A stretch of 64,000 nucleotides of DNA. Origin: Prasinococcaceae sp. CCMP 1430 (lineage: Eukaryota; Plantae; Prasinodermophyta). Below, in pieces: positions 32,901 through 58,135 of this stretch. Both the position numbers and the translations under genes were made by a program. The notes below the pieces were generated by a model. That model made no database searches. It was not told where the DNA came from and saw only the letters and a list, made by a program, of their open reading frames with translations. The DNA is taken from contig RQSC01000028.1 in assembly GCA_013416795.1 (NCBI GenBank), positions 586,043 through 650,042 on the forward strand, given 5' to 3'. Positions within the stretch are counted from its first letter, which is position 1. Each line of letters starts with the position of its first letter.

Positions 32901-35326
32901 TTGAAGAGCGCGAACAGGGCACGCCCGGCAGTCGCAAACTCGGCCAACACTTGGTCGGTGATAGTGGCGCTGGTGGTGCTGCGCCCTGGAGAGCACACAC
33001 ACTGCTCGAGGGCACACGCAGCCGCCACGGTTAAAAGCGCGCTGGCCTCGCCGCTGGCTGATCCGGCGGAGCGTGCGACGCTGCCAGTGGGTGCGCTCAC
33101 GGGTTTTGTCTCAGTGGCAGTCTTGGCAGGGTTGGAGCTCGTTTGAGCGCCAGTTGGCGTGTGCGCTGGCTGTGCGGCACGACTCGGAGCAGCCGCAGCC
33201 GCTGCCACACCCCCGCCGCGCCCGCCGCGGCGGATGCACGCGGCCAGGTCCGCGCACGCCGCCTGCTTGCTTAGCAATGCATTCTTCCCCGCCGCGCGCT
33301 GTGCCTCGCTGCCAACGTCGATGAGCGCCACAATAGCGCGGCAGGCCTCAGCCGCCACCCCCGCCGAGTGCGCGCGGAGGCATGCCGTGACGCGAGCAGG
33401 CGCACCAGCCGTCGACAGGAAAGCCGCCGCCGGTACTGGTGCACCCGATGCAAGCCTGGAAAGCGCCGCGAGCACCTCCATGGCGCCCACCGATGCAGCG
33501 AGCGCCACTGAGTCTGACGCGCGAGCGAGGTCGGCGAGATCGACCTGAGTTGGCAGCAGTATCGCCAGCATCGGCATGATGAGCTCAGCCTCCTTCGCGG
33601 TGAGGGAGTGCAGCTTGGGTCCCGAGTACGCCACGTCGGCGTTCAGCATGCGCACGGCACCGCGCAGGTTACTCTCAGCAGCACGCGCGGCGGCCACGTA
33701 CACGTCGGAGACGGCAACCGAGCGCCCCGTGGCGAGCGCCGCGCGCGCGGCGTCCTGCCCACCGAGCGCGGCCGCGTGCGCGCGCGCGGCACTGAGCAGC
33801 CGGCGCATAGCAAGGCGCTCGACGGGTAGGTCGGCATCGGCGCTCGCACCCGCATCGTGCGCGTCGCCCGCGCCGCTGGCGCGGATGTGCGCGCCGTACT
33901 CACGCGGCACGAGGCTCGCCACCGTGGGCTGCGCCGCTGGCGGGCGGGCAGCCCCGACACGCGCGTCCGCCTGCGCTTGAGCGGGGAAGATGCCAACAGG
34001 CGTGTAGCGCACGGCTGGCGTACTGGCGTGCGCGTACGCTGCGTCGAGAAGCGCCGCGAGGAACTCGTCGCGGCGCGAGCACTCGTACTCGGACGGCGGC
34101 GCGCCGTCCGACCAGTGCAGCGTCAGGCGCAGCGCTGCCGCCTCATGTCGCACCACCGACGCCAATGCCGCCAGCGGGCGGTTGGCAGTCGGCGCAAAGT
34201 CGTCCCGCCGATCGAGGAGGCACTTGGAGTACACTTGCAGGGTGCGCTCCACGCGGCGGGTCAACAACGTGATGGTACGCGGGCTGGCGCCCCCGCCACC
34301 ATCGAAACCGTTGCTGCGCTCACTCCCCGTGGCGTCGCCATTCGAGGTGACTTCACGGTCGTCGGCGAGGCCCGCGAGCGCCGCGCCGGGGCCCTTGAGG
34401 CGCGTGACTCGGAAGGACGCACGCGGCGCCTCCTGCGTGACGTCGAGGCGACGTCGCCGCTCGGCCTGCTGCGCACGGAATTGCTCAACGCCCAACGGCT
34501 GCTGTCGCTGCGCCCCCGCACCCCCTGCGATCGCACCACCTGCTGCGGCGACTGAGACCGTCACGCCCACGGCGGCCGCGCTGGCGCTGCAGATGGCGTC
34601 CAGCACGGGCCGCGCTCCGCCGCCGCCACGCGCGCTGAAGCAGCGCGGCGTGAAGCCGCGGCCGCCGCGCAGCACGAAAGCGTCGGCGTCGGCGAGGAGC
34701 GCCGCCCCCGGCGCAGCCATGTCACGATAGTCGAGTTGCCACGTGCACTCGTGGTGGGAGTCAAGCTCACCCGACGCGGGGCGCTCGTGCAGCTCGCGAA
34801 CGCCCGACGCGCCAACCTCGAGGACACACTCGAGCCACTCACCCGAGCCTCGTCGCAGCCTCGCCGCGGCAAAGCGGCGCGGCGCCCACGCAACAGCCGT
34901 CGGGGGGGTCGCGCCGTTTCGCTGAGCCCGCGCCGCGGCGTCGGCAAGCGCGCGCTGGAGCTCGGTGAGCAGCGCCGCGCGCTCAACGCAGCTCCACCGG
35001 ATTTCTTTGAGCTTGCTGCTGGCGCCGTCGGCGCGCACGCCGAGCGTCACGTCGAGGGCCATGCGCGTTGCCCCGACGGCCACTGCGCCGCCCGTCGGGG
35101 CTGCCGACACGAGCCCACCCGAGCCGTCGTACACGTACGAGTTGGTTGGCGTCGCGCCCGGCCCACAGTCATTGGGGTCGAGCGTGTACAATCGCCGGTC
35201 GGTGACGACCAGCACGCGCTTGTACCGCCCCTTCCACGAGTGCTTCGTCGCCACGAAGCGCCCGAGGACGGCCTCGTCGCCGGGCGCACCGCCGCGGCGC
35301 TCGCGGTCGTCGGCGCGACCCCCACG
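26978..35326 (-). CDS. RME8: RME-8 / DNAJC13 / GRV2 endosomal J-domain protein (5' end in gap)
   Basis: TKHSWKGRYKR N-terminus, IWN-type repeats (LVWNDVTRAEL, LIWTRSMRE, ILWNSRMRAEL), GYF_2-like WYY...GPLS, J domain KRAYRRLAMRYHPDKNP, ELYVGGIFVRLF. Confidence 0.95.
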   Translation of the reverse strand, partial: RGGRADDRERRGGAPGDEAVLGRFVATKHSWKGRYKRVLVVTDRRLYTLDPNDCGPGATPTNSYVYDGSGGLVSAAPTGGAVAVGATRMALDVTLGVRADGASSKLKEIRWSCVERAALLTELQRALADAAARAQRNGATPPTAVAWAPRRFAAARLRRGSGEWLECVLEVGASGVRELHERPASGELDSHHECTWQLDYRDMAAPGAALLADADAFVLRGGRGFTPRCFSARGGGGARPVLDAICSASAAAVGVTVSVAAAGGAIAGGAGAQRQQPLGVEQFRAQQAERRRRLDVTQEAPRASFRVTRLKGPGAALAGLADDREVTSNGDATGSERSNGFDGGGGASPRTITLLTRRVERTLQVYSKCLLDRRDDFAPTANRPLAALASVVRHEAAALRLTLHWSDGAPPSEYECSRRDEFLAALLDAAYAHASTPAVRYTPVGIFPAQAQADARVGAARPPAAQPTVASLVPREYGAHIRASGAGDAHDAGASADADLPVERLAMRRLLSAARAHAAALGGQDAARAALATGRSVAVSDVYVAAARAAESNLRGAVRMLNADVAYSGPKLHSLTAKEAELIMPMLAILLPTQVDLADLARASDSVALAASVGAMEVLAALSRLASGAPVPAAAFLSTAGAPARVTACLRAHSAGVAAEACRAIVALIDVGSEAQRAAGKNALLSKQAACADLAACIRRGGRGGGVAAAAAAPSRAAQPAHTPTGAQTSSNPAKTATETKPVSAPTGSVARSAGSASGEASALLTVAAACALEQCVCSPGRSTTSATITDQVLAEFATAGRALFALFKHPAVRASHVAASIMRTLAEEGNSERCAAARNAALCDGAVLVHLRAALFEERADRREESRLLVSLWCDAHSVAMSLLGRCLPEGLLSMLQEPRSALKHISSAAAMAALDDVGGVDPESVAGRGVGAIANVGKQVSAAGDGGSRLRCNWDALWATADQSWASPSLVWNDVTRAELRHALDREIATLELEQQREEYSARAAVEAAVDQTPVGGAGGTAFGGSVGHVSWNHREFYVRYPSLEEEVRICGTFVRHLIENAAPLKSPEDGGGAGLDGGGMTSQVRSPERSRLSSAVSFGLIRQPAEFFYAAYRELLELADVDVAPLGDSAPRRVDKRHLCVQAMSAAYSQQAGAIGPFKGVPHCGRLIDHTLDAGLRDKLLLLFRALVTSGPNASLVEANAGAMVDAGLVDVLACIVAGAHGAGERALMPMASNLLTATAHVEPLKVWYYIADDAGVDVSSYNPWEMGASCPAGVSCVGPLSRAELRQAFSHGKATGVTRVRARGDAVTALGWQRLRDVRELRWMAAAGRRTLSPQEAAAAALETLIAIVTAAPSVDADGDPVRPIPKAKRALCAPHCLAHVAQAMLCGDARVADLSARLLKAVVAYNPATMVRLYRTGVFYFALAYPGSNLAALSDLLCASHMRQDSTAAPGAGAHANTQGSLASRSALGDLLPESLLQIAETYGAAALAQALTADADTPELIWTRSMREERLVAQLTVHLGDFPRALAENHCAVYEYAPIAPITYPALEDEVWCHRYYLRSLADEERFPGWRIKDVVDVVRALLAAWRAELAKKPMSMSETDAAAELELKEDWHALPRDERESLLKRAYRRLAMRYHPDKNPGGLARFRAVRAAYDRLRAGAAGAQGAAPWRVVLLLRAQCACYRRQPTELAPFMYAGFPLLLAEVERAADAPPGALVPAPRDMSTAGDSGDRQHACVYERAAASSELILLTCMASVQNGDAVARAGGVVPLGALLARTAAAAPADVSDADHRCAIGADVLRTLAGLAALASARDAFDVEAHAVVRDVVRCTRLGDAPLCCDAALRTCGNLCAAPAMQGAIARAGLIFRCLVLMLRYDATLKEEGDTEKSRPDDTDAPDNPSKPVQRNSFDQGASNARVAPGAPAPGTAGQVIAVDAATGKPADAGSARMGPGVPTNVQRHRNELALRASEVLARLCGCLGAAANTPEAKVNASVVTALLTPGVARLLARGEHTEVMGILTSSIETCTILWNSRMRAELESHLDKAIAVEPGEEGYDLAEHASFKFDALKDELVVGGVYVRVYNEKPATLANPVAFAGTALEYASNCAVEADAGDARAHARASASLNAAQIAVASTSPGASMASLKLSMLQPWLLAGAEEATAAGADAVGTSEAALRVVAAACARPGAPQALAPIVRRIFQLTLLGTEAARELSAHALSLVADSATVAKESALGGGILYVLASILPLQASADRPKHSLLPDRLMQPYTVLLSKLLRERVHGERACAMVRAHLPQALVDALRDDETGVVSSLASRSETPALVWSRELACSASTRLLAACTAQVASQRERAEAYEAAVGTAYVIPGELYVGGIFVRLFVKDPAFALRDSKRTAEALLDYFEARGESLMSGASDVGGETESNAVLVSNAATLLIRSYPTVGEHLAMLGKVPRIVALLPTDTDTSARMSSVEGAALRLVHQLVASGDSARSALAGCAGVAARLKACIGKGTAAASLAIEALSRALPSANARRDALVQQCVAAGLLEVLLDLLSEGEGGEGGAGSDEAEADVLVVRALAVDVIRLLSAEGAFADVVREKLAASAVWAAHSGADHALFLPASAREQSGGAAALVGSTHTLALPAPEDVARSALQNVADATAARANVSARAVPVDRVGRAAEEAVENAAEVQPGSADLATTEAADAACEDMPGETPQTTATRADTPPPEEAAEGAATPASSAGGGADDGSAAQDPLQAPDDPLQAASAAANRTVDCGEGGHPLQ

Positions 35327-35769
35327 NNNNNNNNNNNNNNNNNNNNNNNNNNNNNNNNNNNNNNNNNNNNNNNNNNNNNNNNNNNNNNNNNNNNNNNNNN
35401 NNNNNNNNNNNNNNNNNNNNNNNNNNNNNNNNNNNNNNNNNNNNNNNNNNNNNNNNNNNNNNNNNNNNNNNNNNNNNNNNNNNNNNNNNNNNNNNNNNNN
35501 NNNNNNNNNNNNNNNNNNNNNNNNNNNNNNNNNNNNNNNNNNNNNNNNNNNNNNNNNNNNNNNNNNNNNNNNNNNNNNNNNNNNNNNNNNNNNNNNNNNN
35601 NNNNNNNNNNNNNNNNNNNNNNNNNNNNNNNNNNNNNNNNNNNNNNNNNNNNNNNNNNNNNNNNNNNNNNNNNNNNNNNNNNNNNNNNNNNNNNNNNNNN
35701 NNNNNNNNNNNNNNNNNNNNNNNNNNNNNNNNNNNNNNNNNNNNNNNNNNNNNNNNNNNNNNNNNNNNN
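35327..35769. other. Assembly gap (N run)
   Basis: Ns. Confidence 1.
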
Positions 35770-35939
35770 CACATCGCGCGCGGCAAGCGCGCCCGCCGCG
35801 CGGAGGTGCTCGCCCCGCGTGGCGCCGACGCACCTGCGTACTCGACGCGCGCGCCCGCGCGGCGCACCTGCGACGTGGGCGGCGCGGTTGAGGAGGGAGG
35901 CGGTGGTGCGCTCCAGCGCGCTCGTGCGCGGCTGATGCG

Positions 35940-36089
35940 ATGCCGCTCATCGAGGAGCTGCCCTCGGCAGGCGCGGGGGGCGCCGACGCGGGACGGCAGC
36001 AGGCCGCCGGCGCGATGGGGGGCAGCAGCTTCGATTTCAGCCGTGGCATCAAGGGCGCAGGGGGAATGAATGGCGATGGCAGCGGCAGC

Positions 36090-36120
<31 letters not shown>

Positions 36121-36887
36121 GCGTGGACATGTCTCGAGGCGACGGCCGCTTCGCAGATGGCAGCAACGTCAAGATGCAACGCAGTGATCGCGGCAACATC
36201 GTGCGGCTTTCTCCGGCGGCGTTCGACGAGGGCAATCGAGAGGAGACTGTGCGAGAGCTTGAGCGCATAGGGGCTATACCCAAGCAGTGTGGTGGTGGGA
36301 AAGCAGGTGAGGCGCAGGCGGAGCAGCACCGACGTGCGGAGGAGCGGCGACTCCTCGACGGCCTGAAGGCGGAGGCGGCCGCCGCGCCACAGGCGTTCAT
36401 GGACGACGAGATGGCGAATGGTCTGTCGAGGCTGTTCAACGAGAGCTTCCAGGCGGCGCAGGCGTATGCCGGGGCGGCGTCTTCGAGCACAGTCGCGGCC
36501 GCGGGCGAAGAGGGCGCGAGCGGTAGCGGATTGCTCAGCGAGCTGGACAGGGAAGGCGACGTATCGGCCGACGCCGCGGCCGCGGCATCGGCGTTTCGCC
36601 TGGGCGGTGGCGGCGGCAAGGGCTTACCACGGCCCAAGCACTTCATGAGAGAGATCACCAACAAGTCCGGCGCAGCGTGCGTGGAGTGCTCCTTGGAGCT
36701 GCCGGGCGTCTCCAGCGCCGCCGAGGCCGCCGCGGAGCTGCACGTCGCGCCGCAGCTCATCGAGCTGGCGGTGCCTGGACGATTCGAGGCCAGGGTGAGG
36801 CTCCCCAAGCGCGTCCGCGACGCCGAGGCCAAGGCCAAGTGGAAGAAGGCCACCTCGACGCTCGTCGTCACCGCGCCCCTCGAGTGA
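35940..36887 (+). CDS. PIH1/CS (HSP20-like fold) C-terminal domain protein, putative co-chaperone
   Basis: N-terminal MPLIEEL; C-terminal LELPGV...V.LP..V....AKAKWKKATSTLVVTAP. Confidence 0.7.
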
Positions 36888-37276
36888 CCGCTATGTAAGG
36901 CGCACTCGCATAGGCTCGAGCCGTTCTTGCTCGGTTCCGATCGGCTGGGGTACCTGGTACTGAATAGGAATAGGAATAGGATTATCTTGAGGGTTGGTTT
37001 GCAATACGGTCAGCCCCAACACATCCGGGAGGTCCCAACCGGGGCTGAGAGCCGCACCCCCGTACGTCGTGCTGATGACTGAGAGGGTCTGCCAGCCGGT
37101 TGAGGCTGCCGTGCGCGCCACAGCGCGCGCGCGCGCGGCACACGCGCCGCGAGTGCGCGCGCGCAGGCGACGCTCCTCCCTCCCACCACCCCGTCCCATC
37201 CGCTACCTCCCCTCCCCCGGGGCCCGCGGGCAGGGGCGAAATGAGTATGGTAATGTGTGTAATTATGGATGCCTGA

Positions 37277-42383: not shown

Positions 42384-42546
42384 CAGTCACGCGCGCACGG
42401 GCGCGTCCTGGCAGAGAGTGCGGCAAAATGGAAGACGGGCCGGCCCGCCGTGTCACGCGATGTTTAAGAATGCGCCCATGTCTGGACTAAGACCGGCGCG
42501 CGCGCGCCGCTCTCGCCTCGACGCGCGCGTGCTACGTCGAGTCGTG

Positions 42547-43810
42547 CTACGTCGAGTGCGTGTCGGCCGCCTCGCGCGCCTCCGCTTGCGCCTGCGCCTG
42601 CGCCGCCGCCTTGATTACCTCCGCCACGTCGCTGCCGCCCCCGCCGGCGCTCGCGGCGGGCTGGCGCTCGGTGGTGCTCGCGTTGCTCTCGTGGTTGGGA
42701 TCGCGCGGATCCAGGAAGAGCTGTCCGCGTAGCTTGTCGTGCAGCTGATCGAAGAGCTGCTTCTTCAGGCCGTCGAACGCCTTCTCCAGGCGGTCGAGCT
42801 CCTCGGTGGCGCTGCCGGCGCGCGTGCAGGCATGTGGGGAGGAGGGGATGAAAGGTAGCGCTGCGTGTCAGAGTGGCCACGCGTGCGCGGGCTGCGCGCG
42901 CGCCGCGCGCGAGAGAATCCGCCCGCCGCTGCTCGCACCTGGCGTTGTACATGAAGAGGCCGTAGTAGAGCTCGAAGGAGTCGTTGGCGGTGTTGTCGAC
43001 AAGGTCGAGCAGCGTCTGGTAGCCTTTGGTGTCAACGGGCGTACTCTCGAGGTCTAGCCGCCCGAGCATGCGGCCGACAGTGTGCGTGATGAACTGCGAG
43101 GACGCCGCGTGGCGGTCGTGCTCTTCGCACGTCATGGGCACCATCTCGCAGCCCTCCGCCTCGAAGCACCTGAGGAAGTTGGCCACGCGCTCCTCGCGCG
43201 CGGCGCCGGCGTTGACGCGCACCGGGTCGTACATGAACGTGAGTCCCTGCCAGCCGTTCTTGCCCGACTCGGGGCCGAACATGGGGTGCGTGCACAGGAT
43301 GTCGAAGTAGTCCGGCAGCGTGCTCAGCAGCAGGCGCTTGGGGAACTGTTTGACGCTGAGCACGTCCACGAAGAGCGTCGACCGGCGCAGGCGCTGCACC
43401 GGGAGGTGCGAGAGGACCGTCTCGGTGCTCAGAATGGAGGTGCACAGCACCACCACGTCGGGGTGCGACTCGGCGAAGTCGTCCGCATCGGTAAAGTACT
43501 CCACGCCGAGCTCGGCCGCGCGCGACGAGTAGTCTGTGCGCGACGTCGCGAGCACGCGGTGGCCCTGCCGCACGAACTTGGCGGCGAGGAACTGGCCGAA
43601 GTTGCCAAAGCCCACCAGGCCGATCGTCAGCCGCTGCGACTCGCGCACCTCCGCCGCCGCGCGCGCCTCCGAGTCGAAGCCAAACGCCGCGTCGAGCGCC
43701 ACCGCCGCGCGCCGCCGCGCGCGCACCCGTAGCCCCCCCCCTCGCCGCCCCCACACCCCCCTCACTGCACCGCACCGCGCCGCCAGCGCCCGCACGGCCG
43801 CGGCTGCCAC
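42547..43810 (-). CDS. Plant-type arogenate dehydrogenase (TyrA family), single domain; intron about 42938-42815; start unresolved
   Basis: IGLVGFGNFGQF, FVDVLSVK, LCTHPMFGPESGK, HDRHAASSQFITH, SFELYYGLFMYN, ELDRLEKAF. Confidence 0.93.
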
Positions 43811-44134
43811 GCGCGCACCATTTCAGGTTAATAATTAGGGTCCGAAAATATACATACAAACGCCCTGCATTTCTCAGGCGGCGGCGGAACGTTTAGGTTT
43901 CGGCGGCGCCCGCGCGTGGCGGGCGCGCGCCTGGCCGTGATTCAAACCATATGGATTCCATGGAATCCATACCCTATCTCGGCGTTTAAGGAATCCATAC
44001 TATATGTAAAACAATTGTATTGTGAATATGAATTCGCCAGAGGTTCGGCGGCGGCGGAAGCGTGCGACGACCATCACTCAAAAAAAAAAAGGAGGGGAAA
44101 TACAGTAAAAAAAAAAGTCGGGTCGATTCCCCGA

Positions 44135-47454: not shown

Positions 47455-50160
47455 TCACCCACTGCGCACGAAGCGGTGCAGCGCCGCCTCCGGCACGACC
47501 ATCTCGTGGCGCGCAGCTCCATGCGCGCCGGCCGCTCCCGTGTCCGAGGCCCTCCCTGAGGACGACCGGCCACGGCCGCGTCGGCCGTCTCGCTCGCCGC
47601 CGGCATTGCCGCGGCGTGCGGAGAACGGAAGGTTGAGCGCGTGAAGCAGCCGCGCGAGCTCGCCGCGGACAGTCCCTTGCGCCTCGCCCGCGCCAGCCCC
47701 CGCGTCGGCATGGGCGGCGGCGGCGGCGGCAGAGGCGCGCGCGTCACCGCCCTTGGGCCCGACGCCCTCGACATCCTCCGCCTCGAACGAGATGACCAGG
47801 CCGCCGCGCGGGCACGCGCCCGCCCAGAGCCTGCGCATGCCACGCAGCATACACAGCACAGCCACGCGGGCCTCCGAGGCGGTGAGGCCGCTCACGTCCA
47901 CCGCCAGCGCGAGCGGCGGCGACGCTGCGCCATCGTCACCGTCGGCGCTACCGTCACCGCCATTGCTCCTACCGCTGTCGCTTGCGGCGTCGGCCTCGAG
48001 GGTGACACCCGCGAATCCAGCAACGCTGACGACGCTGTCAGCGCCGCCGGGCACTCCGCCGCCGTCGCTCGGCGCGCGAGAATCGGAGCGATCCCGGTGG
48101 CCGTCGCCGCCCGCACCGTCTCCCTCGCCCCTCGCCCGGTCCTGCCCCTCCTCGGCCGCAGTGGCACACACGAGGTCCGCCCACGTGGCCGTGAGCCTGT
48201 CGAAAACCCACGCCAGCTGTTGCTCGTCGCTGCCCGCGGGGATGACGCCGCGGCGGCGGCGGCCGACCGCGTTGCCGCTGGGAGGCACCGCTCCGCCACC
48301 CTCGCCTCCTCCCTGGCCACCAAGTGCGCTCTGGTCGCCCAGGCCGCCCCTGAAGGTGCCGCCGCCGCTCAAGCTGCTGCTACCGAGGCTGGTTGTGCTG
48401 GCGCTCGCGTGGCTGCGCGATCCAGCAGCGCTCGCACCCGCGCGGCTGCGCGCCTTGCGGTAGGCCTCAAAAACGCGCGGCATGATGGAGGCGTCGCCCG
48501 CGCGCTGCGCGGCGCTCACCAGCGTGTGCACTGTCACCACGTTGGGCGTGAGGCCCGCTCGCAGCATGGCGTCGTATGCCGCCAGCACGTCGCTCGGATC
48601 GCCGCCGGAGCCAGCGCCGGGGCCGCCCATGGCCTCGGTGGCGCACTTGATGAGAGCGGTGTAGCACTCCACGTCCGGCCTCACGCCGTCCTCCCTGAGG
48701 CCGGCCATAGCGGCGTGCGCGGCGCTCAAGTCACCGGCGGATGCCGCCACCGCGAGCATTGACTTGCGCGTCACGGCGTCGGGCCGCAGGCCCTCCACCT
48801 CCTGCATCTCCGCGAGGAGCGCCTCGGCCTGCGCGACGTCCTGCGTGGCCACGCACGCGTGTATGAGCGTGTTGTACGTCGACGTGTCGGGGCGCGCGCA
48901 CTGACGCGATGCGATGTCGCACGCGCGCATCTCAGCGAGCAGATTCTCGGCGGCATCGGCGTCGCCCGCCCGCGCACACGCCGCGAGCAGCGCGTTGTAT
49001 ACGGCGGTGTCGGGCACGGCGCCCCGCGCGCGCATCATGGGTAGCACGGACAGCGCGCGCTCGAGCTGCCCCGCGCCGCCGAGGGCAGCGGCGAGGCTCG
49101 CCCACGTGCGCTCGTTGGGCTCGATGCCGAAGCGCCCCATCTGGTCGAGCGCGGCAAGCGCGCGGTCCGGCTGCCGCGCCGCGCCACAAGCGGCGATGAG
49201 CGTGGTGAAGGTCACCACGTCCGGCCTGCACGACACGGCGCTGCCCTCGCCGCCCCCCGCGCGCTCCATCTGCTGCTCGGCGAGCAGCATCTGCATGTCC
49301 TCCATGGCATTGTAGGCCACATCTGCTCTCGCCGCCCGCCAGGCCGCCTTGAGCAGCAGGTTGAAGGTGAGCGTGTCGGGCGTGACGCCGCTGTCGCGCA
49401 TGTCTTGGTACGCGCGCCACGCCACGTCCACGCGCGTGTGCGTCGCATCGAGCAGGTAGTTGTAGGTGGAGGCTGTGGGCGCGCTCTTCACGCGTTCGTC
49501 GGCGCTGAGCTCGTCCCACAGCTCGCACGCGCGCGCGACGTCGCCGCACGCCCCTGCCGCGCGAATGAGGCACTGGTAGGTGTTGAGGTCGGGGCGCTGC
49601 GACGCCGCGCGCGCGCGCCGCATCCACGCGTACACCGCCTCGGCCTCGGCGAGCGCGCCTGCGGCACCGAAGCGTGATATGAGCGAGTTGGCGTAGTACG
49701 TGTCCTGCCGCGGGTTGTCGCGGCAGCGCATCTCGACGTATGCGCAGCCCGCCAGGGGCGCGCGCGCGCGCACGCACGCATCGAGCGCCGCGTCGGCGTC
49801 CACCAAGAATCCCACGCGCGAGCCGCACTCCTGCGCGGCACGCAGGCACGACATGCACGCCGAGGCGCGCCCGGCCTCGAGTGCCGCTCGCGCGAGCAGC
49901 CGCCGCTCGCGCGCGCTCAGCGCAGCAACCGCCGCCAGCGGCGGCCAGCGCGCGCGCGCGCTGTGCCCCGATGCCTTCCTCGGGGGCATCTCGAGCCCGA
50001 GATGCGACACCATCGACGCAAAGGCCTCCTCTGCCGACGCGTCGCCGCTCGCCGCGCCGCCGCGCCGCCCCCCGCGGCCGCGCTGCTGCTGCTGCTGCTG
50101 CCGGCGGCCGCGCTGGCGCTTTTTGTGCCGCGACTGCGCCGGCGGCGACAACGAAGACGG
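47455..50160 (-). CDS. P-class pentatricopeptide repeat protein with a C-terminal SMR-like domain (5' end in gap)
   Basis: Repeated 35-aa units (PDLNTYQCLI, PDTLTFNLLL, PDVVTFTTLI, PDTAVYNALL, PDTSTYNTLI); VDVSGLTASEARVAVL. Confidence 0.9.
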   Translation of the reverse strand, partial: PSSLSPPAQSRHKKRQRGRRQQQQQQRGRGGRRGGAASGDASAEEAFASMVSHLGLEMPPRKASGHSARARWPPLAAVAALSARERRLLARAALEAGRASACMSCLRAAQECGSRVGFLVDADAALDACVRARAPLAGCAYVEMRCRDNPRQDTYYANSLISRFGAAGALAEAEAVYAWMRRARAASQRPDLNTYQCLIRAAGACGDVARACELWDELSADERVKSAPTASTYNYLLDATHTRVDVAWRAYQDMRDSGVTPDTLTFNLLLKAAWRAARADVAYNAMEDMQMLLAEQQMERAGGGEGSAVSCRPDVVTFTTLIAACGAARQPDRALAALDQMGRFGIEPNERTWASLAAALGGAGQLERALSVLPMMRARGAVPDTAVYNALLAACARAGDADAAENLLAEMRACDIASRQCARPDTSTYNTLIHACVATQDVAQAEALLAEMQEVEGLRPDAVTRKSMLAVAASAGDLSAAHAAMAGLREDGVRPDVECYTALIKCATEAMGGPGAGSGGDPSDVLAAYDAMLRAGLTPNVVTVHTLVSAAQRAGDASIMPRVFEAYRKARSRAGASAAGSRSHASASTTSLGSSSLSGGGTFRGGLGDQSALGGQGGGEGGGAVPPSGNAVGRRRRGVIPAGSDEQQLAWVFDRLTATWADLVCATAAEEGQDRARGEGDGAGGDGHRDRSDSRAPSDGGGVPGGADSVVSVAGFAGVTLEADAASDSGRSNGGDGSADGDDGAASPPLALAVDVSGLTASEARVAVLCMLRGMRRLWAGACPRGGLVISFEAEDVEGVGPKGGDARASAAAAAAHADAGAGAGEAQGTVRGELARLLHALNLPFSARRGNAGGERDGRRGRGRSSSGRASDTGAAGAHGAARHEMVVPEAALHRFVRSG

Positions 50161-50646
50161 NNNNNNNNNNNNNNNNNNNNNNNNNNNNNNNNNNNNNNNN
50201 NNNNNNNNNNNNNNNNNNNNNNNNNNNNNNNNNNNNNNNNNNNNNNNNNNNNNNNNNNNNNNNNNNNNNNNNNNNNNNNNNNNNNNNNNNNNNNNNNNNN
50301 NNNNNNNNNNNNNNNNNNNNNNNNNNNNNNNNNNNNNNNNNNNNNNNNNNNNNNNNNNNNNNNNNNNNNNNNNNNNNNNNNNNNNNNNNNNNNNNNNNNN
50401 NNNNNNNNNNNNNNNNNNNNNNNNNNNNNNNNNNNNNNNNNNNNNNNNNNNNNNNNNNNNNNNNNNNNNNNNNNNNNNNNNNNNNNNNNNNNNNNNNNNN
50501 NNNNNNNNNNNNNNNNNNNNNNNNNNNNNNNNNNNNNNNNNNNNNNNNNNNNNNNNNNNNNNNNNNNNNNNNNNNNNNNNNNNNNNNNNNNNNNNNNNNN
50601 NNNNNNNNNNNNNNNNNNNNNNNNNNNNNNNNNNNNNNNNNNNNNN
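50161..50646. other. Assembly gap (N run), flanked by low-quality homopolymer-rich sequence to about 50850
   Basis: Ns; runs of A, C and G. Confidence 1.
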
Positions 50647-51088
50647 CCCGGCCGGGGCGACGCCGCCCGCGGGGGTGGGGGGCCGGCGGAGCGCGGGGTT
50701 TTCAGGCCCCCATCAAATCAAAGCCGTTCCAAAAAAGCCCCCTCCGGGGAAAAAAAAAAAAAAAGTGGGTTTTCGTGGCCCATCAAAGAAAGGCGTTCAA
50801 AAAAGCCCCCTCCGAAGAAAAATAAAAATAAAAATAAAAATGGGTGTGCAAGCACGGTCAGAGCGCCTTGCGTGGGAAGCCCTCGAGATCGCCCGTGGGT
50901 ACATTTGTGCTTGAAATGTATGATGTGACGCACGGAGGAAAAGATGAAAAAGGCAAGGGCCGAAAGGGCTCGGGCGCGCGCGTGGCGCACACACGCGCCC
51001 GCAGGCGCGCGCGCGTGCGCCAGAGGGGGAAGGTGGGGCGGGGCAGGCGATTGGCGCGCCGCGCGCGGGTCGGCGCGGCCGCCCGGAC

Positions 51089-51400: not shown

Positions 51401-51745
51401 GTCGAAGACCGGGTTTGTCCGCCGACTTACACGGGGTCTTCTGTATTTGTATCGGTGACGTCAGACGCCATTCCGGGGACATTTTGCGGATGGCCGCCGC
51501 TTCCCTCCGTCCACCCGTCACTCGAGCCTTAAACCCTCTTTAGAAATTCCCTTTATTCCGCCTGCACGCGCTCGAAACCCAAACGGGGCCGAGGCATCGC
51601 CTCTCCGGCTCGTGGCGCGGCGCCACGCCGCAGTTTGTGGGCGCCGGCCGCCCGCAAACTGCGGCCGAACGCGCCCCAACCCCGATCGAAACCCAGGCCA
51701 CGCGGAAACGCAAAAAGCCAAAAAACGAAGGCGCCATCGCGGAAA

Positions 51746-53140
51746 ATGCGGATGAAAGCTCCAATCACCACCACCATCCATCATCAACGTCCCAGAAACT
51801 CTGCCACTCGGCGCGCGCGCGGCGGCGCTGCGCACCGCACCGCATCGCATCGCATCGCATCGCATCGCATCGCATCGGCGGCGGCGGCCGCCACCGAGGC
51901 CGTGGCGGAGGAGGCGGAGGAAGAGGACTATGAGGACAACCGCGTCCCCGTGACGGTCGTGACGGGCTTCCTGGGGTCGGGCAAGACGACGCTCATCAAC
52001 CGCATCCTGACGTCACCCGACCACGGCAAGCGCATCGCCATCGTGGAGAACGAGTTTGGCGCGATCGGCATCGACAACGACCTGCTTGCGGCGCGCGGCC
52101 GCGAGTCAGAGAAGGGCGACAACATAGTGGTGATGCTCAACGGCTGCGTGTGCTGCACGGTGCGCGACGACCTCATCACGACGCTCACCGAGATGGTGAC
52201 GCAGCGCCGCGAGCTCTTCGACCACATCATCATCGAGACCACGGGCCTGGCCAACCCGGCGCCCGTGGTTCAGACGTTCTACCTGGATCCCACGCTCAAC
52301 GAGGAGCTCGTGCTGGACGGCGTGGTCACGCTCGTGGACGCCAAGCACGCCGAGATGCACCTCGACGAGGAGAAGCCCGCGGGCATCGTCAACGAATCGG
52401 TGGAGCAGGTGGCCTTCGCCGACAGGCTGGTGCTCAACAAGTGTGACCTCGTCGACAAGGCTGACCTTGAGCGCCTCGAGGAGCGCGTGCGCTCCATCAA
52501 CGCGCTGGCCACCATCAAGCGCTCCGTCAACTCGGAGGTGCCCATGGACTACCTGTTGGGCATCGGCGGGTTCGACATCGACACGGTGGAGGACTCCGTG
52601 AAGGAGTCGTTCGTGCCGAGCGGCGAGGCGGACTCGTCGGCCGGCGAGGAACAGGCCTCCGAGAAGGGGTGCGGCGACCCCGCGTGCGAGGACCCGGCGT
52701 GTGACGATCACTCGCACGCGCACGCGCACGAGCACGGCCATGCACACGCGAGCGCCGATGCCGAGGAGAGCGAGTGCTCGTCCGGCTGCACGGACCCCAC
52801 GCACGACCACTCGCACTCGCACGACCACAAGCACGACGACGCGGTGACCAGCGTGTCGCTGAGCCTCAAGGGTGACCTCGACCTGGATGCCATCAACGCC
52901 TGGCTGGAGAGGATGCTCACCGAGCGCAACGAGGACATCTTCCGCATGAAGGGCATCCTCTCCATACAGGACGTCGACGAGAAGTTCGTCTTCCAGGGCG
53001 TGCACCAGCTCTTCGAGGGTCTTCCCGCCGAAGAGTGGGGCGAGGGTGAGGAGCGTGTGAGCCGCCTGGTCTTCATCGGCAAGGAACTCGACGAGGCGGA
53101 GCTCACGGCGGAGTTCGAGTCGTGTATGGCGAAGCCCTAG
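51746..53140 (+). CDS. COG0523 / CobW-family (ZNG1-like) metal-chaperone GTPase
   Basis: VPVTVVTGFLGSGKTT, ENEFG, GCVCCTVRDDL, ETTGLANP, NKCD, His/Cys-rich insert, FRMKGIL...FQGVH (CobW_C). Confidence 0.95.
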   Translation: MRMKAPITTTIHHQRPRNSATRRARGGAAHRTASHRIASHRIASAAAAATEAVAEEAEEEDYEDNRVPVTVVTGFLGSGKTTLINRILTSPDHGKRIAIVENEFGAIGIDNDLLAARGRESEKGDNIVVMLNGCVCCTVRDDLITTLTEMVTQRRELFDHIIIETTGLANPAPVVQTFYLDPTLNEELVLDGVVTLVDAKHAEMHLDEEKPAGIVNESVEQVAFADRLVLNKCDLVDKADLERLEERVRSINALATIKRSVNSEVPMDYLLGIGGFDIDTVEDSVKESFVPSGEADSSAGEEQASEKGCGDPACEDPACDDHSHAHAHEHGHAHASADAEESECSSGCTDPTHDHSHSHDHKHDDAVTSVSLSLKGDLDLDAINAWLERMLTERNEDIFRMKGILSIQDVDEKFVFQGVHQLFEGLPAEEWGEGEERVSRLVFIGKELDEAELTAEFESCMAKP

Positions 53141-53275
53141 GCTAGAGCAGTGGCGGCGAGAGCGCGCCAAGTGTAGGATAGCAGCGTCATCGCACGCGTC
53201 GCGCACCCGCAAGTGCTCATGTTTGTCTCCCGGCAACGAGTGAACACGCGCCGCCGTTACGACCACCAAGGATGT

Positions 53276-54960
53276 TCACATTGCGGTCGCCTCTTGCACG
53301 CGGTAGGCCTATTCGCGGTCGTGTGTGTGCGCGCGTTCGTGTGCCCATGTGCGTTTGCATGGGAGAGCGTGGGTGTGGGTTGGTGTGCACGCGTGCGTGC
53401 GGACGTGTGCACGCACGCGCGCGCGCGCGCGTGGCCAAACGCGTGAAGAACCGCGGCGCGAATGCATCAGCGCTCTCTGTTTCCGGCGTGCGAGCATCTG
53501 CGCGCGCGCCCAGGCTCGCGCGCGACGCGCGCGAGCGCGCCACGCGCACCTTCTTGGCCAAGCCGTAAGCGAGCTCGTAGACAACCTCTTTGGCTTCCTC
53601 CATGTCCATGGCGCCGTCGTCCACCATGCCCGCCGCCCAGCCAGACACCGCGCGGCGCCACAGCGCATGGCGCGCGGGGATGCTTGGGAACGCCCGCGTG
53701 TCATCGTTGAAGCCCGCGAGGCTGTACACGCCCGCGCTCTCGGTCACTCGGTCTAAGTAGCGGCGCATGCCGTTGCGCGAGTCGTGGAACCACCACGGAG
53801 GGCCCAGCTTGAGCGCGGGATACGCCCCCGCGAGCGGCGCCAGCTCGCGCGCGTAGGCGTCCTCATCGAGCGTAAAGATGATGATCGTCATGTTCGGATG
53901 CGAGCCGAACTCGGCGAGCAGCGGCCGCAGCGCGCGCACGAACTCCTGCGCGCGTGGCACGTCGCCGCCCGAGTCGGGGCCGAACGTGTCTCGCAGCGCC
54001 GCGTCGTGGTCGCGATAGACGCCGCAGTGCAGCTGCATGACGAGGCCATCCTGGGCGCTCATGCGCGCCATCTCGAAGAGCATATGGCCCTCGAAGGCGG
54101 CCGCGCCCTCCGGCGCCACCCTCCCCTCCAGCGCCTGCGCGAACGTCATGCGTGCCGCGAGCGTGCTGAGCGGCGCGATGGGTGTTGCGCCCAGGTCGTT
54201 CACGCCGTGGTCTGTGGCCAGCGCACCGGCGTCGACGAATGCGCGCCGCCGCTGCCTGAGCGCCACAAGGAAGCTGTCGTAGTCAGAAACCTCCACGCCG
54301 CTCACTGCGTTGAGCTGCTGCAGCAGCCCCAGGAAGCCCGGAGCGCCCACTTTGAAGAGCGCGTCTGGGCGCAGCGTGGGCACCACGCGCGCGCTGACAC
54401 CCGGGGCGCGCGCGATGGCCGCATGCGCGGCGAGGTCGCTCGTGGCCGCGTCGGTGGTGGATAGGAGTTCCACGTTGAACGACGCGAGCAGCGACCGCGG
54501 CGCGGCCGCCGGCGCGGCCAGCGCGTCGACGAGAAAGTCGTACGACGCGTCGGCGTTGTGCGCGCCCAGCGGCCAGTCTGCCCAGCCGAAGACGCTCTCG
54601 AGGCTATCTCGCAGCCACAGCGCCGTGGGCGTGCCGCGCAGCACGTGCGCGTGCGTGCAGAACGTACGCCAAGCCGAGCGGTCGTCCGCGACGGCCAGTT
54701 TCGTGCCTTCGCGCGCGCGCGGCCCGCGCGGCTCCACGCCGAGCGCCTGGGCCGACACGCGCGCCTGCGAGCGCATCAGGCGCAGCAGGTAGTGGTCGGG
54801 CTTCACGAAGAGCTCGGTGGGCGTCCTCCACCTGAACATCTCATCGGCCAGGACGGCCGGATCGACGTGCCCGTGCGGGCAGACGAGCGGTAGCGCTTCC
54901 ACGGACGCGTAGAGCTCGGCCGCAAGCGCCAGCCGCGCGGAGCCGCCGGCGCCCCCCAGG
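53276..54960 (-). CDS. uxaC: Uronate (glucuronate/galacturonate) isomerase, bacterial type; intron 53549-53309; ORF open upstream to 55490, true start unresolved
   Basis: LPLVCPHGHVDP, PDHYLLRLM, PTLRPD, ATDHG, MQLHCG, GPPWWFHDS, GFNDDTRAFPSIPARH, LAYGLAKK|AYRV. Confidence 0.93.
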
Positions 54961-55633
54961 TAGCGCAGCTCCCGTCGCGAGCTGGCCGGCGCCGGCGCTG
55001 GCGCCGTCTCTGGCGCGGCGTCCGCCTCGCCGCAGAGCGCCGCTGCCGCTGGAGTTTCTTGAACCTCGAGCGGCACGCGCGCGCTTCCTTCGGGTCGGCG
55101 CGCACCCGCAGCCCATGCCGCGCGTGCGCGCGCGCCGCGCGCACCGCGCGGCGCGCGACGGCGATCGGATCGGCCAGGAAGAGAAGGGGGAAGAGGGGGG
55201 GGGAGGAAGTCGTCCCCTCCGCCGCCACGCCGTGTGTGGCGCCCACCCCCACCTCCCACACCCACACCTCCCTCACACGCGCCTCCCCTGCAAGCTCCGT
55301 AACGGCCAGCAGCAGCACCCCACTCAATTAAAATGCTGCTCTGAACGAACCCCGGATTCGATCCGCGCTTGCCCCCCTCCACGCCGAGGCTCCTGCGAAG
55401 GCGCGAGCCAAAAACACCGGTAGTTTGATCCAGAAATCGCAGCGGGCGCGCACCGCTGCGGGCGTACACGCAGTGGCGTGAGCATATCATCGCCTAGATA
55501 TGAACCCTACATATAAACCCAAAACATGCGAGTGACCCCTAACTGCGCGGCCCGGGGCCGTTCCCCCGGTGGGCGCGCGCGCTGCGAGCGACCGCGGGCG
55601 AGGTGGGTGGGGGGTGGGAGAGCGGAGCGCGGA

Positions 55634-55774
55634 CGCGGGCGCGTGTTGTGTGCCTGTCTGTGCGCCCGCCGGCGCGAGCGCAGGCGTGCGCGGGCGCGGG
55701 CCACTCGTCCGCGCCCGCGCACGCCTGCGCTCGCGCCGGCGGGCGCACAGACAGGCACACAACGCGCGCCCGCG
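55634..55774. repeat. Inverted repeat / hairpin: 66-bp arms (one G.T mismatch), 9-nt loop
   Basis: 55634-55699 pairs base by base with 55709-55774; 55645-55699/55709-55763 is perfect. Confidence 0.95.
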
Positions 55775-55798
55775 CGCCCGCGCGAGAGCGCCGCCGCG

Positions 55799-58135
55799 AT
55801 GGCGGCCGACGATGCGGTCACGCGCGACCGGTACGGCTTCGTGGTGTCCCCGGCCCAAGTGGGGCAGTTCCGCGAGCACGCGCCGCTCTACCTGCGCGAG
55901 GAGGAGGAGCGCGGCCCGCGGTGGGACGCCTTCCTGGCGCGCGCCGCCGACGCGCTGCGCAAACAGGCAGCAGGCACGGCGGACGCGGGCGCGGCGGACG
56001 CCGGCGCCGCCGAGAGCGACATCGACGTTGTCGTGCGGGCCCTGGAGGACCCCGCCGCCTCGCTGGGCGGTGGGTGCGAAGGGGACGCCGCGTCCCCCTC
56101 CGCGCGCGCGGACCTCGAGAGCGAGCTGCGCGTGCTCGTGCGCGGCGGCATTCCAATGCACCTACGCGGCGCGCTGTGGGGTGCCTTCACCCGAGCGCGC
56201 GGGAGGGCCTTGCTCGCGCGTGGGGGCAGGGACAACGACGAGCACTCGGAGGGGCAGGCAGAGGGGCAAGCGCAGCGGTGTGCGGGCGGCAGGGACGCGC
56301 AACCGCAGGCGACGCCGACACGCAGCGTGGCAGCGCCTGCGGCCGGCGAATGCGCGGGCGCAAATGTGGCGGGCACGCCTGCGACCCCCACGGCGCAGCT
56401 CACGAGCGTCCTTGGGGCAAGCAGCCCCTTCGTGAGCCCCGCGACGCGCGCCAAGCGCGCCACCGCCGGACAGGTCGAGAAGGATGTGCGCCGGTCCTTG
56501 CCATGCCATCCGGTCACGGAGCACGAGGCTGGCGCCGAGGCGCTGCGCAGCGTGCTGCTGGCATACGCCGAGCACAACCCATCGACAGGCTACTGCCAGG
56601 GCATGAACTTCGTGGCGGCGCTGCTGCTGTTGTTCCTTGACGAGGCGGACGCGCTGGACGCGCTCGTGTGCCTGGTGGATGGCGTGCTCGAGGGCTATTT
56701 TACCGACGACCTCGAGGGAATGCAGTGCGACGCGGGCGTCGTGCGCGAGTTGCTGCACTCGCACTACGCTGCCGCGGCTGCACGGCTGGACGCACTGGGC
56801 GTCGACGTGGCGTGTGTTGTCCCCCAGTGGCTCATGTGTGCCTTCGTGAATTCGCTGCCCTGGGAGACGACGTTGCGCTTGTGGGACGTGCTGCTCTACG
56901 AGCAGGACCGCACAGTGCTCTTCCGGGCGAGCCTCGCACTTTTTGAACCGCATGCTCGCGCGCTCTCGCGCGCGCAATCCTCCGGCGACGCGCTCACCAC
57001 GCTCATGGGCATGGCTCCCGCGGCATTCGACGCCTCGGAGCTCGTAGCGCATGCCATGGCGCTGCGTCTTGATGGGGCGGCGCTCGTGATCCTGCGCGCA
57101 GAGGCGGCCGAGCGCGTGGCGGCGCAGATGGCTGCGCGCCACGAGATGGTGCGCGTCGACGAGCAGCACATTCGCATCGAGGCATCGGGCGACGCAAGTG
57201 AGCGTGAATGTGCGGGGGGCGATGGGGCAGGCGAGTCGCCCGGCGGCGGCGGTGAGGGCGCTGAAGCGCGCGCGGAGGGAAGCGGCCGCGTACGTGGAGG
57301 CAACGCGGGTGGGTGTGCGGACGGCGGCGAGCAAGTACCTGGTGGAGACGTGCTGGCGCTGAGCAGCGAGCTGCGGGCGGCGACGCTGCAGCTTGGCCAG
57401 CTGCGGGGAGAGATGTCCGACGCCCGCGTTGGCTCCGCGCGCGCTGAGCGACGCAGCCGCGCCTTGCGCGAAGAGCTTGACGCGCGCGCGGCGTCCGAGG
57501 CAGCGCTGCGCGCGGAGCTCGCGCGCAAGGATGAGGAGTGCGCACACGCAGCCGAGGAGCGCGCACACCTCGCCGCGCTTGTGGCGCTTCTGTCGGAGGA
57601 GTGCGCGGCACTCGCCGCGCGGAACGGTGAACTCTGCGCTGCTGCGGGCGCGCTGGGCGTCGACCCAGCTCTGCTTGGCCCGTGTGAGCTCCCCCGTTCG
57701 CCAGCACCCGCGGCTGCGCGTTCGCACACGCTCAACGCACGCGTGCGCGGCTTGGACTCAGCGCCTCCATCGCGTGGCGCTGAACGCGATGGCCGCGGCG
57801 CCGGCAGAGGTGGTGGCGGCGGCAGCTCTGGCGCGGACGCCTCGCCCGCAGAGAGCGTTCTTGAGGCGGCTCCACAGGTGCGCCTGTCCCTCTCGCTGAC
57901 GTCACACCAAGATGCCGGCGGGGCCAGCTGTGAAGGAGCCGGCGCGCCCGCTGGCGCGAGCGAGGATGGGCGAGCGAAACAACCCGCACACGCTGCGGAG
58001 CTGCACAAGCGCTCCTATTCGGAGGACCCCTCGTCGCTGCGCGTGGCGCGCGCGGGAGACGGCGGTGATGGCAGCGGGGAAGGCGAGGGCGGCGGCAGGA
58101 TCTCACGCGCGCTGCGAAACTTTTGGCGGCGCTGA
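55799..58135 (+). CDS. TBC-domain Rab GTPase-activating protein with a C-terminal coiled coil
   Basis: RDRYGF, VRGGIPMHLRGALW, QVEKDVRRS, GYCQGMNFVAA, QWLMCAFVNSLP...RLWD. Confidence 0.93.
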   Translation: MAADDAVTRDRYGFVVSPAQVGQFREHAPLYLREEEERGPRWDAFLARAADALRKQAAGTADAGAADAGAAESDIDVVVRALEDPAASLGGGCEGDAASPSARADLESELRVLVRGGIPMHLRGALWGAFTRARGRALLARGGRDNDEHSEGQAEGQAQRCAGGRDAQPQATPTRSVAAPAAGECAGANVAGTPATPTAQLTSVLGASSPFVSPATRAKRATAGQVEKDVRRSLPCHPVTEHEAGAEALRSVLLAYAEHNPSTGYCQGMNFVAALLLLFLDEADALDALVCLVDGVLEGYFTDDLEGMQCDAGVVRELLHSHYAAAAARLDALGVDVACVVPQWLMCAFVNSLPWETTLRLWDVLLYEQDRTVLFRASLALFEPHARALSRAQSSGDALTTLMGMAPAAFDASELVAHAMALRLDGAALVILRAEAAERVAAQMAARHEMVRVDEQHIRIEASGDASERECAGGDGAGESPGGGGEGAEARAEGSGRVRGGNAGGCADGGEQVPGGDVLALSSELRAATLQLGQLRGEMSDARVGSARAERRSRALREELDARAASEAALRAELARKDEECAHAAEERAHLAALVALLSEECAALAARNGELCAAAGALGVDPALLGPCELPRSPAPAAARSHTLNARVRGLDSAPPSRGAERDGRGAGRGGGGGSSGADASPAESVLEAAPQVRLSLSLTSHQDAGGASCEGAGAPAGASEDGRAKQPAHAAELHKRSYSEDPSSLRVARAGDGGDGSGEGEGGGRISRALRNFWRR

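Follow-up and report, generated by a model that had tools for sequence, protein, structure and literature searches.

The window analysed here, a stretch of 64,000 nucleotides (nt) of contig RQSC01000028.1 from the alga Prasinococcaceae sp. CCMP 1430, contains a full-length gene for uronate isomerase (UxaC) on its minus strand at 53276-54981, with all positions counted from the first letter of the window. UxaC (EC 5.3.1.12) is a TIM-barrel enzyme of the amidohydrolase fold that carries an HxH motif at the end of barrel strand 1. The frame of 522 codons upstream of a C-terminal intron was compared with protein family profiles. It matched the Pfam family PF02614 at 2e-66 over profile positions 15-461 of 464 with a score of 225 bits, where the cut-off is 25, and scored 424.8 bits against the NCBIfam equivalog PRK02925, which is above the curated threshold of 387. 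The closest solved structure is PDB 2q01 (1.9e-115), and the alignment with it runs from end to end.

The coding part of the gene is divided into a main exon of 477 codons (53550-54981, SRRELRYLGG...ELAYGLAKK), which is supported by the Pfam, NCBIfam and PDB matches and whose 5' border is a model, with certain homology beginning at about 54970, and a last exon (53276-53308) encoding AYRVQEATAM and the stop codon TGA (53278-53276). The last exon is identified by its translation, by the AYR(L/V) C-terminus of the family and by a wild variant from Tara Oceans. As the initial annotation had claimed, the hallmark motifs of UxaC are intact, and all of them were located on the minus strand. The metal-binding HGH (HxH) motif at 54867-54875, within PHGHVDP, aligns to PHGH of 2q01 and PHNH of 1j5s. 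PDHY, at 54789-54800 and including the DHY signature, and WWF, at 53787-53795, fall into invariant columns of alignment A1, which comprises the algal UxaC and ten relatives. GFNDDTRAF at 53688-53714 bears the D-x-R pair, and its residues N416, D417, D418, T419 and R420 are invariant in the same alignment; the Asp and Arg of this pair are presumably those with catalytic roles in the mechanism of UxaC. The algal sequence retains all of the more than 90 invariant columns of A1. Judged by every sequence-level criterion of the family, the algal protein itself is an ordinary UxaC member, and the host is the unusual part.

The main exon and the last exon are separated by a spliceosomal intron of 241 nt (53309-53549), whose donor GTGCGCGTGG starts at 53549 and whose acceptor ..GAATAG ends at 53309, giving canonical GT-AG borders. 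Reading through beyond LAKK leads into low-complexity sequence, whereas removal of the intron leads to AYRVQEATAM and a stop codon. All full-length bacterial relatives end with ..LAK[KR]AY[RK]L within one to three residues in alignment A1. Since the complete C-terminal helix (LAKK|AYRV) is present only once the 241 nt have been removed, splicing restores the conserved C-terminus.

Additional evidence for this intron comes from the Tara Oceans metagenome scaffold L006, which carries the wild variant and is 97.4% identical to the window over 1534 nt. In 887 nt of the main exon, 13 substitutions (10 synonymous and 3 non-synonymous) and no indels separate the two sequences, and the 33 nt of the last exon as well as the splice sites are perfectly conserved. 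The intron, in contrast, differs by 8 substitutions, a 6-nt insertion and a 2-nt deletion. With a net change of +4, these indels would cause a frameshift in a coding stretch. Intron read-through was rejected on these grounds, as it would break the frame and lose the bacterial C-terminus. A 236-nt contig from a marine metatranscriptome (X1) covers 53783-53549 and then continues with one letter that differs from the genomic T of the donor. This contig end fits spliced RNA because the letter expected there from the last exon is C and not the T of the intron; its support for splicing amounts to this single letter, and no junction-spanning read was seen. A search for the splice junction in transcript-derived proteins with the last 110 amino acids (aa) of the main exon returned only bacterial fragments with at most 73% identity. 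The predicted RNA fold of the intron was not clearly more stable than that of shuffled sequence (z -1.77). Overall, the intron is well supported, and the borders that the initial annotation had given for it, 53549-53309 with the split at LAKK|AYRV, proved to be exact.

The 5' end of the gene is less clear-cut. The 5' limit of 54960 in the initial annotation is not a start, because similarity to the N-termini of bacterial proteins (..DRYF..) extends as far as ELRYL at about 54970. Within 370 nt upstream there is a single ATG, at 55116, which lies out of frame but in a good context, with G at both -3 and +4. A GTGCGC donor directly after ATGGGCTGCGG (55105), combined with the AG at 54983-54982, would yield MGCG-SRRELRYL.., which has the length of a bacterial N-terminus. 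In this model, a putative first mini-exon ATGGGCTGCGG (M-G-C-) at 55106-55116 on the minus strand is followed by a putative 5' intron of 124 nt (GTGCGCGCCG...GGCCAG, 54982-55105), a GT-AG pair that brings the ATG into frame and shares its GTGCGC donor with the C-terminal intron. At least two further GT-AG pairs also restore the frame. A second intron at the 5' end that makes the ATG at 55116 usable is probable, and its borders are a model. RNA data, which had been suggested as a check of both intron and start, bear on the C-terminal intron, where the X1 contig stops at the donor; the start and the mini-exon have no supporting reads.

An open reading frame (ORF) of 757 aa starting from an ATG at 55490 was considered as an alternative and rejected. 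Its N-terminal 170 aa are of low complexity, and it begins 36 nt from the ORF of the neighbouring RabGAP gene. Moreover, the single window letter at 55095 corresponds to 105 letters in an independent DNA assembly (X2). Because this net difference of +104 is not a multiple of three, the stretch is probably non-coding, which speaks against the 757-aa ORF. The difference itself represents either a strain indel or a GC-rich repeat collapsed in the assembly of the window.

The UxaC gene is flanked by a convergent gene for a CobW/COG0523 GTPase (51635-53140, plus strand; Pfam cobW and CobW_C) and a divergent RabGAP-TBC gene (55526-58135, plus strand; Pfam 2.6e-43). The CobW neighbour is 100% identical to the EukProt protein PRCOL_00006442-RA, and its further relatives belong to green algae and land plants. 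PRCOL identifiers denote the genome of Prasinoderma coloniale CCMP1413, which has a GC content of 69.8% (PMC7455551). The window was assigned to P. coloniale because its CobW gene is identical to PRCOL_00006442 and its GC content of 68% is in agreement. Ten long ORFs of the window are of eukaryotic type (ankyrin, thioredoxin, AMP deaminase, protein kinase, dual-specificity phosphatase, Duc1, PPR, HECT/TRIP12, RME-8 and RabGAP-TBC), and the remaining scanned ORFs show no Pfam match or a prephenate-dehydrogenase-like fold. The GC content at third codon positions (GC3) of the UxaC gene is 0.89, compared with 0.74-0.89 for its neighbours. A 12.6-kb contig of X2, which stems from an independent DNA run of 2024, spans 52900-55700 and links UxaC to both neighbours, and the Tara scaffold L006 runs from UxaC to the 3' end of CobW. 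With eukaryotic flanks and an independent assembly across the junctions, contamination is excluded and the gene is a genuine nuclear gene of the alga, in line with what had been concluded earlier from the flanks.

Some further features of the surrounding genes were observed. The stop codons of CobW and UxaC are 135 nt apart in convergent orientation, and a contig from a probable RNA run (X6) reaches 53251, 25 nt from the UxaC stop; given this extent, the 3' untranslated regions of the two genes must overlap in antisense. The CobW/COG0523 protein contains a long His-rich insert (..DHSHAHAHEHGHAHA..THDHSHSHDHKHDD..), and with 416 aa the annotated PRCOL protein does not reach the length of the ORF. 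Inserts of this kind are typical of metal-chaperone members of the CobW/COG0523 family. A 64%-identical CobW homolog was found on a contig from an ocean sample (L167, Tara run ERR1719417), a possible sign of an uncultured alga related to P. coloniale and about as distant as the source of the UxaC ortholog described below. An NAD-binding ORF at 42467-43822 was a candidate for a mannonate oxidoreductase but was rejected, since it is prephenate-dehydrogenase-like and scores below its cut-offs. Two runs of N at 35327-35769 and 50161-50646 fall within an RME-8-like ORF (26981-37009, minus strand) and a PPR-repeat gene (47458-50712, minus strand), so that both gene models are incomplete in the assembly of the window.

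Relatives of the protein were collected by word-index searches of a collection of 5.8 billion proteins, covering relatives above approximately 55% identity. Among the matches listed, just two proteins are nearer to the algal UxaC than bacterial ones, namely the Tara variant and a protein with 63% identity (P0002). The next-best proteins are bacterial and 49-54% identical, and the named ones among them belong to Chloroflexota, Anaerolineae, Caldilineaceae and Ktedonobacter. No named eukaryotic UxaC beyond the two relatives was among the matches listed, although the same database returned CobW proteins of plants and algae from EukProt, MMETSP and NCBI. Searches of 185,579 prokaryotic species genomes and of metagenomes from the Joint Genome Institute (JGI) returned bacterial loci only, with 43-53% identity. 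In the JGI metagenomes no further eukaryotic relatives were found, the best match being 53% identical, and IMG/VR gave no sign of a viral vector, with one match to a 50% fragment.

P0002 is encoded on DNA contigs from six sequencing runs (L001-L005) with a GC content of 72%, and its copies are 63-65% identical to the algal UxaC. In the ortholog on L001, a 103-nt insertion (GTGCGCGTGG...CACAG, L001:3907-4009) shifts the frame at LADE|AFRW. This gene has no intron at the C-terminus, and the donor motif of its insertion is the same as that of the algal C-terminal intron. A frame-breaking intron at another position indicates a second eukaryote with an intron position of its own. The transfer is not private to P. 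coloniale: a second GC-rich eukaryote holds a 63%-identical, intron-bearing ortholog. It probably took place before the two lineages separated, with gains or losses of introns following later. The shared donor motif and the high GC content suggest that the source of L001 may be another prasinodermophyte. No synteny between the window and the L001-L005 contigs was detected outside the UxaC gene.

The ortholog on L001 also has no in-frame ATG, showing the same layout as the algal gene. Its nearest upstream ATG opens a hydrophobic stretch resembling a signal peptide or an anchor (L001:3347-3467, MACHRHLLSALGALAALVVLAALL..), which a candidate intron from GT(3468) to AG(3763) would join in frame to the enzyme. 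The UxaC of P. coloniale has no such hydrophobic stretch, and in the 5' models both copies start with M-[G/A]-C.

A tree was calculated with IQ-TREE (LG+C20, unrooted) from the three eukaryote-type sequences and the 80 best genome matches; it is subject to the skewed composition of the algal sequence and comprises the top bacterial matches only. The eukaryotic UxaC sequences form one clade (100/100) among bacterial sequences. This clade joins a long-branched metagenome-assembled genome of the Deinococcales (95/80), a grouping that is probably caused by long-branch attraction. The rest of the tree is an assemblage dominated by Chloroflexota with embedded Nostoc, Acidobacteriota and others. On these sequence comparisons the origin of the gene is most likely bacterial, and the tree does not pick out a single donor group. 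Horizontal acquisition, as proposed in the initial annotation, fits this picture because all relatives except the two eukaryote-type ones are bacterial at no more than 54% identity. The affinity to actinobacterial and alphaproteobacterial sequences suggested there was not recovered: the nearest proteins are of the Chloroflexota type, and only the best solved structure comes from an alphaproteobacterium, Caulobacter.

The likely function can be derived from the bacterial members of the subfamily. In the isomerase pathway, uronates are converted via mannonate or altronate to 2-keto-3-deoxygluconate (KDG) and its 6-phosphate (KDPG), which gives pyruvate and glyceraldehyde-3-phosphate (PMC4870679). 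UxaC is located near a D-mannonate oxidoreductase (NF006132, above the cut-off) in Nostoc, where this gene lies directly downstream, and in Litorilinea, where it lies approximately 1 kb upstream on the opposite strand. In view of bacterial neighbours such as mannonate oxidoreductase, the tagaturonate epimerase UxaE, myo-inositol oxygenase and sugar ABC transporters, the subfamily works in the classical isomerase pathway. By homology, the algal enzyme most likely converts D-glucuronate to D-fructuronate and D-galacturonate to D-tagaturonate, the entry reaction of this pathway.

Two of the bacterial loci are of interest in their own right. In Nostoc sp. PCC 9305 (L046:2376-9755), genes for a myo-inositol oxygenase, a LacI regulator, UxaC, D-mannonate oxidoreductase and a LarA-like protein lie together, and the locus resembles a cyanobacterial gene cluster for the catabolism of inositol via glucuronate and mannonate. 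In Ktedonobacter robiniae (L008:1585-8819), four genes of a sugar ABC transporter are followed by UxaC and then by UxaE, which by its gene content is the epimerase variant of galacturonate catabolism in a member of the Chloroflexota.

The substrates in the alga could come from several sources. Polygalacturonases (K01213 and K01184) are listed in the KEGG table of P. coloniale (PMC7455551). By analogy, uronates from dissolved organic matter, galacturonate released by such polygalacturonases and glucuronate derived from myo-inositol are plausible, and the recycling of wall or mucilage, which the initial annotation had given as an example, is one possibility among these sources. A more far-reaching proposal, to which only a low probability can be given, is that Prasinoderma and its relatives run a complete isomerase-type route. 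Besides UxaC it would need a mannonate or altronate oxidoreductase, a dehydratase, KDG kinase and an aldolase, and its substrates might be supplied by myo-inositol oxygenase or by polygalacturonases of their own. If true, this would be the first eukaryotic case of a pathway regarded as bacterial, and it would imply the osmotrophic use of dissolved organic matter rich in uronic acids by a deep-water picoalga.

Taken as a whole, the data are best explained by a nuclear gene of P. coloniale that was acquired by horizontal transfer and encodes an intact, bacterial-type UxaC, which is adapted to its host, under constraint and most likely active, and this explanation can be held with good confidence. 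The donor would have been a bacterium with a UxaC of the large 'GFNDDTRAF' subfamily, for which Chloroflexota provide the best representation today, and the transfer would have taken place before the lineage separated from at least one further eukaryote rich in GC. Afterwards, the gene would have taken on the codon usage of the host and gained spliceosomal introns at lineage-specific positions, in P. coloniale one within the motif LAKK|AYR and probably another at the 5' end. The enzyme may feed uronates from dissolved organic matter, polygalacturonases or myo-inositol oxygenase into a catabolism of the mannonate/KDG type. The retention of all catalytic and metal-binding motifs and the comparisons with the L006 variant and the L001 ortholog point to purifying selection on the protein. 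The presence of the gene in marine RNA is documented by two short X1 contigs that match UxaC and share the synonymous variants at 53628 and 53670 with the Tara genotype.

Several observations weigh against this explanation. The stem of the eukaryotic clade is long, with 0.98 changes per site, and attaches to another long branch, which makes the placement of the clade and the identification of the donor unreliable. Between the algal gene and L001, dN is 0.32 and dS 0.71, but the resulting dN/dS of 0.45 is only a rough value since dS is compressed by the extreme GC3 and codon bias. No in-frame ATG exists between 55490 and the HGH motif, so that the start would need the putative 5' intron. UxaC is without contigs in two probable RNA runs labelled with the species of the window and taken as cultures of P. 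coloniale, although the CobW neighbour is covered at a depth of 18-80 (X5 and X6, whose contigs reach 53145 and 53251); expression in standard culture is thus probably low. Searches spanning 60-192 aa and 257-819 aa retrieved no PRCOL protein for UxaC, while the PRCOL protein of the neighbour was found, and the published, transcript-guided gene set of P. coloniale seems to be without this gene. Finally, none of the 17 long coding-like ORFs scanned in the 64-kb window encodes a partner enzyme of the isomerase pathway, which agrees with the earlier statement that uxuA, uxuB and kdgK do not occur there.

The missing start, the missing PRCOL model and the lack of UxaC contigs from culture RNA next to a covered neighbour could also be expected if the gene were a transferred relic that has fallen out of use, being silent or decaying, with its start lost and no active enzyme made. 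Such a fate is unlikely in view of an intact exon of 477 codons with all invariant residues kept, of ten synonymous against three non-synonymous differences from L006 with indels confined to the intron, and of splice sites and a last exon that are perfectly conserved. The ortholog of the second lineage is likewise intact at 63% identity, and it shares the layout without an in-frame ATG, a feature that suits a conserved 5' intron better than decay. The two matching metatranscriptome contigs also speak against a silent gene.

Slightly less probable still than a relic is old inheritance, either by endosymbiotic transfer from the cyanobacterial ancestor of plastids or from an early eukaryote, followed by near-universal loss. 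The long stem would suit an old event, and UxaC sequences of Nostoc are among the 80 best genome matches. When the algal and Nostoc sequences were forced into a single clade, the approximately unbiased (AU) test gave a p-value of 0.087, which does not reject this grouping at 0.05, yet the constrained tree was 37 log-likelihood units worse than the free one, in which Nostoc is nested with strong support in the clade dominated by Chloroflexota and not beside the algal clade. The absence of other named eukaryotic proteins among the matches listed, in a database that does hold plant and algal proteins, also disagrees with vertical descent, and the isomerase route has been placed in bacteria only, with fungi lacking homologs of the bacterial pathway genes (PMC4870679). 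That the stretch is contaminating bacterial DNA or a chimera of the assembly has a negligible probability. The bacterial type of the protein and the assembly gaps elsewhere in the window could be taken as hints in this direction, but the gene is interrupted by a spliceosomal intron, matches its neighbours in GC3, is joined to eukaryotic genes in both the X2 contig and the Tara scaffold, and has no closer bacterial protein than one of about 54% identity.

Acquisition by horizontal transfer, the preferred explanation, has implications beyond this locus. A conserved, intron-bearing UxaC in the deepest-branching phylum of green plants and in a second eukaryote would mean that such an enzyme can be retained over a long time in a eukaryotic nucleus. 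It also provides a concrete candidate for the use of organic carbon by an oligotrophic marine green picoalga and marks a gene that is apparently absent from the published gene set of P. coloniale. The value of the finding is moderate, as the transfer of single bacterial enzyme genes into algal nuclei is a common and familiar phenomenon. In the open literature, no paper was found that ties a glucuronate or uronate isomerase to the own genome of an alga or another eukaryote. Neither UxaC nor the KEGG Orthology numbers of its partner enzymes were found in the available text of the P. coloniale genome paper and its supplement (PMC7455551).

Among characterized systems, UxaC of Caulobacter crescentus (2q01) is the closest in structure, being collinear over its full length with query residues 62-522 aligned to residues 22-468 of the chain. 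Together with the bacterial subfamily from Chloroflexota, Acidobacteriota and Nostoc, it shares the HxH, DHY, WWF, NDDTR and LAKKAYR motifs and a length of approximately 470-480 aa with the algal protein. The algal gene differs from them by an identity of only about 50%, its nuclear location, at least one spliceosomal intron and a GC3 of 0.89. Furthermore, the genes of the bacterial subfamily are found beside mannonate oxidoreductase, UxaE or transporters, whereas the algal gene is not part of such an operon. The characterized isomerase-pathway enzymes of Salmonella (3iac) and Thermotoga maritima (TM0064, 1j5s) share the Pfam and NCBIfam family, the fold and presumably the reaction with the algal protein, but they are far more distant (E-values of 1e-39 to 6e-45), and Thermotoga has TDSR in place of the algal DDTR.

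The known eukaryotic routes act on the same substrates, D-glucuronate and D-galacturonate. In plants, hexuronates are handled by myo-inositol oxygenase and glucuronokinase salvage. The glucuronate-gulonate-xylulose route of animals and the reductive GaaA-D and GluC routes of fungi are further examples, and the first step of these eukaryotic routes is a reduction or phosphorylation instead of an aldose-ketose isomerization and is catalysed by unrelated enzymes. The nearest parallel within the host itself is given by the bacterial and archaeal glycosylation genes described for P. coloniale, where horizontal transfer was invoked as an adaptation to oligotrophic deep water (PMC7455551). Like UxaC, they are prokaryotic-type genes in the same nuclear genome, but they represent other enzymes, another pathway and another apparent donor group.

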